NCBI GenBank assembly: GCA_002189035.1
Contig: NEEC01000008.1
Span: 248,001-312,000, forward strand
DNA length: 64,000 bases
DNA from: Utricularia gibba
Lineage: Eukaryota > Plantae > Magnoliophyta
Direction: 5' to 3'
The position numbers and the translations under genes are program-made. Below, one piece after another: positions 1,777 through 2,600 of the stretch (position 1 is the first letter of the stretch; each line of letters opens with the position of its first letter). The notes beneath the pieces are model-generated. The model was not told where the DNA came from. It worked only from the letters and a program-made list of their open reading frames with translations, and searched no databases.

Positions 1777-2600
1777 TCAGATACTCTCATGAAAGTTAAC
1801 TGACCGTGATAAAGCTGCTGGATTTGCCATAAGAACAGCCATTGCTGCACCACCATTCATGAATCTACCTCTCTTACTATTTGAATCAAGAACCTGATAA
1901 AAACCAACGAACGATCTGATCTTCTCATTCTTGATCCCCAGAGTAGACCATACAGAACTATTTGCAGTTTCAGTGGCATCATCGATCTTCATTGATGGAG
2001 CCACATCCTTAAAACATTGTAATTGGGAAAGAACAATCAATAATACAAATGGGTATGGAAACATCGACTAAGAAGAGCCAGAATGAATAAAGTTTACTTC
2101 ATCTTGACCGTTATTCTGGGTCGATGTCCACAACCTTTTGCAGTTCTTTGTCTGCGAGCTGTTACTAGTACGTTGAAGGCTTTGGCTTTTGGATTCCTGC
2201 TGATCGTTTCCACCACAGAGTTCAACTCCAGACAAATCATCCTGTGAAATCAAAACAAGATTAACAATCAAAAGATTCTATCCGTATTCACAAAATGGAT
2301 GGAAAACGGAGTTCGCAAGAAAAACTCAACCCGTCATTCTCCAACTACAGGGAAGAGGAACCAATCTGTATCTAAACTTAAAACAACAAAAAAAAGGCCA
2401 AGGTAGTATCAAACCTTTTCGTTTTTCTCAATTGCTGCGACGTATGAAAGATCCTGATCGTCGATCCTTCCTGTTAGCGTGACCGAAGAGCCATTCAAGA
2501 CCTTAGGCATCATTGTTCGAGGACCTTGAACTAATTCCCCTTTCGAGAGTAGCATTTCAGTCCGGGAAATCCGGTAATCTTGAGAAGACTCAGATACCAT
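1777..2600 (-). CDS. CDF (cycling DOF factor)-like protein with the C-terminal CDF motifs but no DOF zinc finger; exons 2600-2415, 2241-2098, 2007-1777; 186 aa
   Basis: Three phase-0 exons with GT-AG introns (AAG|GTTTGA..TTTCACAG|GAT; GAA|GTAAAC..TTTTAAG|GAT). The last exon encodes KIDDATETANSSVWSTLGIKNEK and LMANPAALSRSVNFHESI*, matching the CDF motifs LRIDDPxEAAKSSIWxTLGIK and LxANPAALSRSxxFxE. I found no CPRC...CKNC in any frame between 1777 and 2800. Confidence 0.8.

Follow-up and report, generated by a model that had tools for sequence, protein, structure and literature searches.

A spliced CDF-like gene in Utricularia gibba retains the C-terminal module of its family and lacks the Dof finger and IKLFG motif

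The window analysed here, a stretch of 64,000 nucleotides (nt) from Utricularia gibba (assembly GCA_002189035.1, contig NEEC01000008.1, positions 248,001 to 312,000), carries a CDF-like gene on the minus strand at 2600..1777 and, tail to tail with it, a MYB105/117-type R2R3-MYB gene on the plus strand at 471..1571, the two stop codons lying 205 bp apart. The MYB gene, read from the sequence and identified by its named homologues, has three exons and encodes 282 amino acids (aa), whereas the CDF-like gene, read directly from the sequence, has three exons of 62 + 48 + 76 codons and encodes 186 aa. In canonical CDF proteins the C-terminal region is the GI/FKF1-binding domain and IKLFG is the TOPLESS motif (PMC11588431), roles that an initial annotation of this DNA had taken as established. 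The evidence below supports the conclusion that the CDF-like gene is an expressed, spliced derivative of a CDF gene at the MYB105/117-linked position, without the IKLFG motif and the Dof zinc finger and with a constrained C-terminal module.

The coding part of exon 1 (minus strand, 2415..2600) specifies 62 aa starting with MVSESSQDY. Intron 1 (2242..2414; 173 nt, GT..AG, phase 0) separates it from exon 2 (2098..2241), a Ser/Gln-rich segment of 48 aa that contains TKNCKRLWTS (aa 93-102), and intron 2 (2008..2097; 90 nt, GT..AG, phase 0) is followed by exon 3 (1777..2007), which encodes 76 aa and ends in TGA. Exon 3 corresponds to the CDF C-terminal module that is GI/FKF1-binding in canonical CDFs, and it contains both motifs of that module, motif 1 IDDATETANSSVWSTLGIKN (1927..1986, aa 118-137) and motif 2 ANPAALSRSVNFHES (1783..1827, aa 171-185). 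Canonical CDF genes consist of two exons and are interrupted 60-70 codons ahead of the finger; both introns of the CDF-like gene sit elsewhere, and no canonical intron is found at the site of intron 2. A short direct repeat flanks intron 2, with GATGAA at the end of exon 2 and GATGTG at the start of exon 3, and is too short to count as evidence.

Expression was assessed with RNA contigs of public runs from the same organism, unstranded and without time information, which were placed on window positions 1001-7000. These contigs derive from RNA, because introns with canonical ends are skipped throughout the stretch, and the strand of each transcript was deduced solely from the splice-site dinucleotides. 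Both introns of the CDF-like gene are skipped, with CT..AC ends on the plus strand, in three runs from two studies (X1, X2 and X5; joints 2240/2414 and 2006/2097, each cut +1), and a single 628-nt contig spans 1805-2006, 2097-2240 and 2414-2695. Upstream, the contigs end at 2693-2695 in all three runs and depth is zero across 2801-3000; the 5′ untranslated region (UTR), as far as the contigs extend, thus occupies 2601..2695 and is free of ATG. An in-frame TAA at 2696..2694 closes the reading frame on the 5′ side, and because no ATG intervenes between this stop and 2600, the N-terminus of the protein is fixed. At the other end, the 3′ UTR of the main isoform covers 1728..1776 as far as the contig extends (X5 record 14, spanning 1728-2006). 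No joint exits the 5′ exon in the contigs of X1, X2 and X5, which show presence and not absence. The three-exon frame of 186 aa with both C-terminal motifs, which the initial annotation had proposed, was therefore confirmed by the sequence reading and by the spliced contigs, with no sign of a Dof exon spliced in from elsewhere. No stop interrupts the frame and the two introns are precisely spliced, so that neither a frame-disrupting mutation nor a loss of expression marks the locus as a pseudogene, although the loss of two functional parts fits a partial gene.

To place exon 3 among known proteins, its 76 aa were scored against 1.84 billion representative proteins at a cut-off of E<=1e-3. The search returned 133 matches, far beyond chance, the best at 6e-11, and the best named ones were Lamiales CDFs from Penstemon, Rehmannia, Castilleja and Sesamum ("Cyclic dof factor 1"). 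CPRC is present in 77 of the 133; most of the others look like fragments of Dof proteins, their first residues falling within the Dof domain or shortly behind it (MRNVPVG..., MDTKFCY...). A 191-aa "Cyclic dof factor 1" of Sesamum angolense without a Dof domain (P0009) was considered as a natural Dof-less gene and rejected as a split annotation of one CDF: at 8303-10576 of its locus (L003), a 221-aa Dof gene of the same orientation ends 46 bp before the P0009 gene. The family pattern of the module, ..PKTLRIDDP.EAAKSSIW.TLGIKN.. followed by ..ANPAALSRSLNFHE.., is recognizable in exon 3, where 22 of the 30 columns conserved at >=85% are kept, among them all of ANPAALSRS.NFHES, and where the changes are PKTLR>PSMK, DP>DA, EAAK>ETAN and I>V. 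At the DNA level, alignment to Lamiales CDF genes survives only in two motif-coding islands (75-86% identical), one at motif 1 (1987-1918; 77-83% nucleotide identity, E down to 1e-13) and one at motif 2 (1827-1784; 75-86%).

The rate of change of the module was compared with that of its neighbours by three-taxon branch lengths, this lineage against other Lamiales. Relative branch length came to 2.3-4.5x for the module, compared with 3.0-3.5x for MYB exon 2 and 1.9-3.8x for TCP. The module has therefore not outpaced its constrained MYB and TCP neighbours and displays no extra relaxation, which points to purifying selection along most of the branch or to a truncation of recent date. Together with the conserved columns and the DNA islands, this agrees with the initial argument that intact splice sites and an intact frame speak against simple decay, as the C-terminal module looks constrained rather than decaying. 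Another accession differs by R13P, D75D, N137K and A165S, that is, 3 non-synonymous to 1 synonymous change, compared with 2 to 1 in each of two neighbour genes, numbers too few for a test of selection. A structural model of the module, built from a 36-sequence alignment, reached a predicted local distance difference test (pLDDT) score of 56 with two short helices only, and a profile search of the PDB with the module matched no solved structure; as modelled, the module behaves like a disordered linear-motif docking region.

The two other hallmarks of the family are missing, as the initial annotation had stated. A Pfam search of every exon piece gave no match at E<=10, zf-Dof (PF02701) included, and a six-frame scan of the 64-kb window showed neither the Dof-finger pattern (CX2CX21CX2C) nor CPRC. 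IKLFG is absent from the 186 aa, and a hidden Markov model (HMM) built from 60 CDF N-termini found no match in exon 1. Exon 1 has no significant similarity to any CDF region, the first 110 residues (exons 1-2) match nothing, and ESM Atlas features for exons 1 and 3 were likewise uninformative, returning nothing. The CDF-like protein therefore has neither a Dof zinc finger nor a TOPLESS motif, and no Dof-like remnant was seen upstream in the three frames of the minus strand across 2500-3150.

Several possible traces of the missing half were considered. By eye, exon 1 could pass for a degenerate IKLFG N-terminus when set against the Rehmannia CDF P0002, a candidate dropped on the negative result with the N-terminal HMM; as a linker from behind the Dof domain it was also rejected, the HMM score being non-significant and equalled or exceeded by 640 of 2000 shuffles. 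A frame-shifted RRRNPNKS in the 5′ UTR has suitable spacing for a relic of the GRRKNKNS tail and was set aside, having neither statistical nor DNA-level support. VSESSQ (aa 2-7, right after the start Met) fits VS[ED][AS].Q. Among 111 CDFs, 8 have this motif, always at a distance of 12-15 residues behind the finger and at no other place in the protein; the motif was defined post hoc and is a lead only. TKNCKRLWTS in exon 2 scores 5.6 bits against the Dof HMM, a value that none of 2000 shuffles reached, and would retain two of the four Cys ligands of the finger. An alignment to KRLW-VPKTLRI of P0010 is equally good once 11 residues are taken as inserted where intron 2 lies; this leaves the segment ambiguous between a trace of the Dof CKNCQRYWT knuckle and a trace of KRLW-VPKTLRI, the stretch ahead of the module. 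The loss of the Dof domain would fit a 5′ truncation with its breakpoint immediately after the finger, or decay in place accompanied by deletions.

The position of the CDF-like gene connects it to a known syntenic group. The best named matches of the MYB neighbour are MYB105, MYB105-like, MYB117-like, LOF2 and CSA-like proteins, in accordance with the tail-to-tail MYB105/117-type gene of the initial annotation. Its statement that Arabidopsis CDF5 and CDF6 adjoin MYB105 and MYB117 is upheld by gene identifiers: At1g26780 is MYB117/LOF1, with At1g26790 named as a proximal gene (PMC3076444), AT1G26790 is CDF6 and AT1G69570 is CDF5 (PMC9361860), and AT1G69560 turns up in MYB papers. In tomato, MYB117/Trifoliate is Solyc05g007870 and SlCDF2 is Solyc05g007880, so that identifiers place a MYB gene next to a CDF gene in both Arabidopsis pairs and in tomato; the tail-to-tail orientation was read in the window only. 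In Rehmannia, the best MYB match of the whole collection (DH2020_026912) and the second-best CDF match (DH2020_026910) carry tags two apart and lie on consecutive contigs, and the CDF of this pair (P0002) is canonical, with both IKLFG and the Dof finger. Given this canonical partner and the conserved MYB105/117-CDF pairing, the best reading is that the CDF-like gene is orthologous by position to a canonical CDF. Around the best CDF matches in Penstemon, Rehmannia, Sesamum and Castilleja, which have larger genomes, no anchor of the window (MYB, RING-CH, hydroxylase, TCP or kelch) was found within 8-10 kb.

Gene order is shared with Genlisea aurea, in which KE526936.1 (L006), positions 1-10921, is syntenic with the window and has MYB, RING-CH and kelch genes in common with it, the kelch gene being 74% identical. 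This region is compact, with the order MYB, MYB-CC, RINGv, ZF-HD, RPL34e, cullin, kelch. Missing from it are the window's CDF-like gene, its TCP gene and its sphingolipid-hydroxylase-like gene; other genes stand in their place, which suggests differential gene loss.

Upstream, the CDF-like gene shares a promoter interval (2696..3140) with a divergent, expressed RING-CH gene that begins near 3140-3270, about 450 bp away. G-box or abscisic acid-responsive element (ABRE) type elements lie in this interval at 2798, 2878 and 2956, and it contains 2 of the 11 CACGTG and 2 of the 4 ACGTGGC sequences of the whole 64 kb, approximately 100-260 bp upstream of the end of the CDF-like transcript.

A second isoform, which the initial annotation did not foresee, extends from the CDF-like gene into its MYB neighbour. 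An alternative intron (minus strand, 1522..1804, GT..AG) is defined by a joint 1521/1805 with CT..AC ends in X1 and X2; its donor (1805/1804) sits inside exon 3 after ...ANPAALSR and its acceptor is at 1521. The alternative 3′ exon (1003..1521) runs antisense through MYB exon 3, MYB intron 2 and part of MYB exon 2 (X1 record 1, X2 record 7), and a further minus-strand intron at about 929-1051 is indicated by a loose end of X2 at 1051 whose letters equal window 902-927. The contigs over the MYB gene are unspliced across MYB intron 2 (1187-1368), no plus-strand joint is listed there, and they look like antisense RNA rather than MYB mRNA. The two genes thus form a cis-natural antisense transcript pair, in which the joint leads from 1805 to 1521 and the RNA on to at least 1003, with the strand given by splice dinucleotides only.

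Of the interpretation given in the initial annotation, the structural half is supported by these results; its other half, a decoy that may titrate GI/FKF1, is taken up next. Guided by the documented role of the CDF C-terminus, we consider it plausible, if a little short of probable, that the CDF-like gene encodes a small non-DNA-binding protein that competes with full-length CDFs for FKF1/GI. The gene retains only the approximately 75-residue C-terminal module, predicted to be disordered, which is the GI/FKF1-binding region of canonical CDFs; incapable of DNA binding, its product would engage the partners of the CDF C-terminus, namely the kelch repeats of FKF1 and/or GI, and as a rival ligand or substrate it would damp the FKF1-GI-driven turnover of full-length CDFs. 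Translation of the CDF-like transcript, binding of its product to these partners and an effect on CDF stability or photoperiod output are each steps that this decoy mechanism would entail. Since the docking module is conserved and the DNA-binding domain is missing, we infer that a decoy explains the gene most economically.

A number of observations weigh against the decoy. The moss protein PpCDL1 has the C-terminal domain yet showed no binding to FKF-like proteins in yeast two-hybrid (PMC11588431). Within the U. gibba module, motif 1 departs from the family at its PKTLR edge, the conserved GIKN is changed by N137K in one accession, and the fit to the family C-terminal profile ranks 133rd of 134 scored, at 76 bits versus a median of 111. 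The alternative isoform encodes 183 aa, ends in ...SRFLMRC* and lacks SVNFHESI. No orthologue of the Dof-less form was found among the approximately 1.84 billion representatives in the exon 3 search, and the Genlisea aurea interval between MYB and RING-CH holds the MYB-CC gene and no trace of a CDF module, so the CDF-like gene has been lost at the syntenic site of that species, a second point that the initial annotation had not foreseen. If the truncation is recent, moreover, the conservation of the module says nothing about its present function.

Some of these points also count in favour of a decaying relic, in which a deletion took the 5′ half of a CDF gene and the remainder is transcribed from the interval shared with RING-CH, its frame open for lack of time and its protein functionless. 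We regard this explanation as a serious though somewhat unlikely one. Two of three functional parts are gone, exons 1-2 resemble nothing, the module is nearly the worst in the family by profile fit, a non-synonymous polymorphism falls inside GIKN, Genlisea has dispensed with the gene outright and the exon 3 search turned up no Dof-less orthologue elsewhere. However, the 186-codon frame is intact with two precisely spliced introns, the module is no faster than constrained neighbours on a long branch, every conserved column of motif 2 is retained and the polymorphism ratio of 3:1 resembles the 2:1 of each neighbour. The lack of recognizable Dof or N-terminal debris in the exons or in the upstream DNA also suits an old loss better than a recent one.

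Instead of a protein, the locus could act through RNA, with the 3′-extended spliced isoform serving as a cis-natural antisense transcript of the MYB105/117-type gene and the reading frame being incidental. Such a role would be comparable in kind to that of FLORE, an RNA antisense to Arabidopsis CDF5. The identifier of FLORE, AT1G69572, is listed alongside that of CDF5, AT1G69570 (PMC9361860). The joint 1521/1805 and the intron at about 929-1051 tie exon 3 to RNA that, in two runs, crosses MYB exon 3, intron 2 and part of exon 2 in antisense, and contigs that cover the MYB gene remain unspliced across its intron 2 without a listed plus-strand joint. The alternative isoform also reaches a stop 5 codons past the junction, upstream of another intron. 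A transcript with a stop in such a position is a likely target of nonsense-mediated decay. Nevertheless, the strand of this RNA is known from splice-site dinucleotides in unstranded contigs only, the main isoform stops short of the MYB gene (X5 record 14), and the amino-acid-level conservation of both motifs is left unexplained, and we consider an RNA-level role improbable.

A functional small protein might also act through other or new partners of the CDF C-terminus and not through FKF1/GI, which we think very improbable. The altered PKTLR edge of motif 1 beside an intact motif 2, the novel N-terminal 110 residues and the moss CDF-like protein, which has the module and failed to bind FKF-like proteins (PMC11588431), are in line with such a switch, but GI/FKF1 binding is the only documented role of the module and nothing hints at another partner. 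Barely credible is a full CDF whose finger lies far upstream, is added by trans-splicing or falls in an assembly gap: contigs that end at 2693-2695 cannot prove its absence, but the lack of a joint out of the 5′ exon, the in-frame stop at 2696..2694, the absence of a finger pattern or CPRC from 64 kb and of a remnant upstream, which together led us to reject an upstream Dof exon, and the divergent expressed RING-CH gene about 450 bp upstream all speak against it.

Returning to the decoy, a more elaborate version is conceivable, in which a "degron-only" CDF is kept by selection, tunes the stability of full-length CDFs through competition for FKF1-GI and is linked to control of the neighbouring MYB105/117 gene by an antisense isoform; this combination we regard as doubtful.

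Comparison with known systems places the CDF-like gene closest to the MYB105/117-linked CDFs (AtCDF5, AT1G69570; AtCDF6, AT1G26790; SlCDF2, Solyc05g007880; Rehmannia DH2020_026910), with which it shares the C-terminal module and the type of MYB neighbour. Its module is 50% identical to that of Rehmannia P0002 over 76 aa, with motif islands 80-84% identical at the DNA level. Unlike these CDFs, the CDF-like protein has neither Dof finger nor IKLFG, measures 186 aa versus their approximately 290-480 aa and is encoded with two non-canonical introns. In Arabidopsis, FLORE (AT1G69572) is likewise an antisense transcript, arising at a CDF locus that belongs to this syntenic group; it is a separate RNA, whereas in U. 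gibba it is the transcript of the CDF-like gene that reaches into the MYB neighbour in antisense orientation.

Plant microProteins include miP1a/b, which consist of a B-box only and act on CONSTANS, and LITTLE ZIPPER. Like these, the CDF-like protein is a small derivative of a transcription factor family that is related to a larger multi-domain protein and retains only the protein-interaction part. MicroProteins usually have a single domain and fewer than approximately 120-140 aa; the CDF-like protein has 186 aa, of which the first 110 precede the module. The part retained is a disordered docking or degron region and not a dimerization domain, and it would titrate an E3 ligase or GI and not a transcription factor. 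The potato alleles StCDF1.2 and StCDF1.3, which are without the FKF1-binding end, are like the U. gibba gene natural CDF truncations, and they uncouple DNA binding from FKF1-dependent turnover (PMC12962551). The two cases are reciprocal: StCDF1.2 and StCDF1.3 have the finger without the FKF1-binding end, and the CDF-like gene has that end without the finger. Engineered ZTL/FKF1/LKP2 E3-ligase decoys (bioRxiv 10.1101/115071) are similar in concept, being truncated pathway members that bind partners without completing the reaction; they are artificial and ligase-derived, whereas a CDF-like decoy would be natural and substrate-derived.

The turnover of CDFs by FKF1-GI is a core day-length switch upstream of CONSTANS, FT and potato tuberization, and natural alleles without the FKF1-binding end altered the day-length response of potato in tuber formation. 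The opposite arrangement, a binding end without a DNA-binding domain, that is, a natural Dof-less CDF, was not found described in the literature searched. If the CDF-like protein binds FKF1 or GI, it would provide a natural competitor with which the effect of substrate load on photoperiod output could be tested, stabilizing CDFs that are themselves unaltered, and a degron-only CDF, if true, would open a new microProtein class, whose members titrate an E3 ligase or a scaffold and not a transcription factor. If it does not bind, the locus still records the dismantling of a transcription factor gene in a compact, fast-evolving genome, and its outright deletion in Genlisea.

Other features of the window were noted in passing. 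Transcripts of the plus-strand RING-CH (RINGv) gene are spliced in two alternative ways in the 5′ UTR (3273-3757), with joints 3300>3757 and 3576>3757 in three runs. At 5571 (plus strand), contigs of all four runs follow this gene to its stop codon and then continue for 155-255 letters unlike the window, the first of which resemble its own 3′ UTR; this divergent tail probably comes from a paralogous or allelic RING-CH copy. The nearest proteins to the TCP gene (9995-11011) are from Lamiales, at 54-56% identity only, which together with the Genlisea synteny suggests a compact and fast-evolving lineage within this order; an exact look-up of the TCP product gave no record. Judged by eye from their translations, a retrotransposon gag/pre-integrase-like fragment lies on the minus strand at 22861-23316 and overlapping MULE/MuDR-type transposase-like open reading frames lie on the minus strand at 58693-60342. 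On the plus strand at 52183-54037, two adjacent PPR-like reading frames, 350 and 258 aa long with 25 bases between them, may represent one pentatricopeptide-repeat gene broken by a stop or frameshift.

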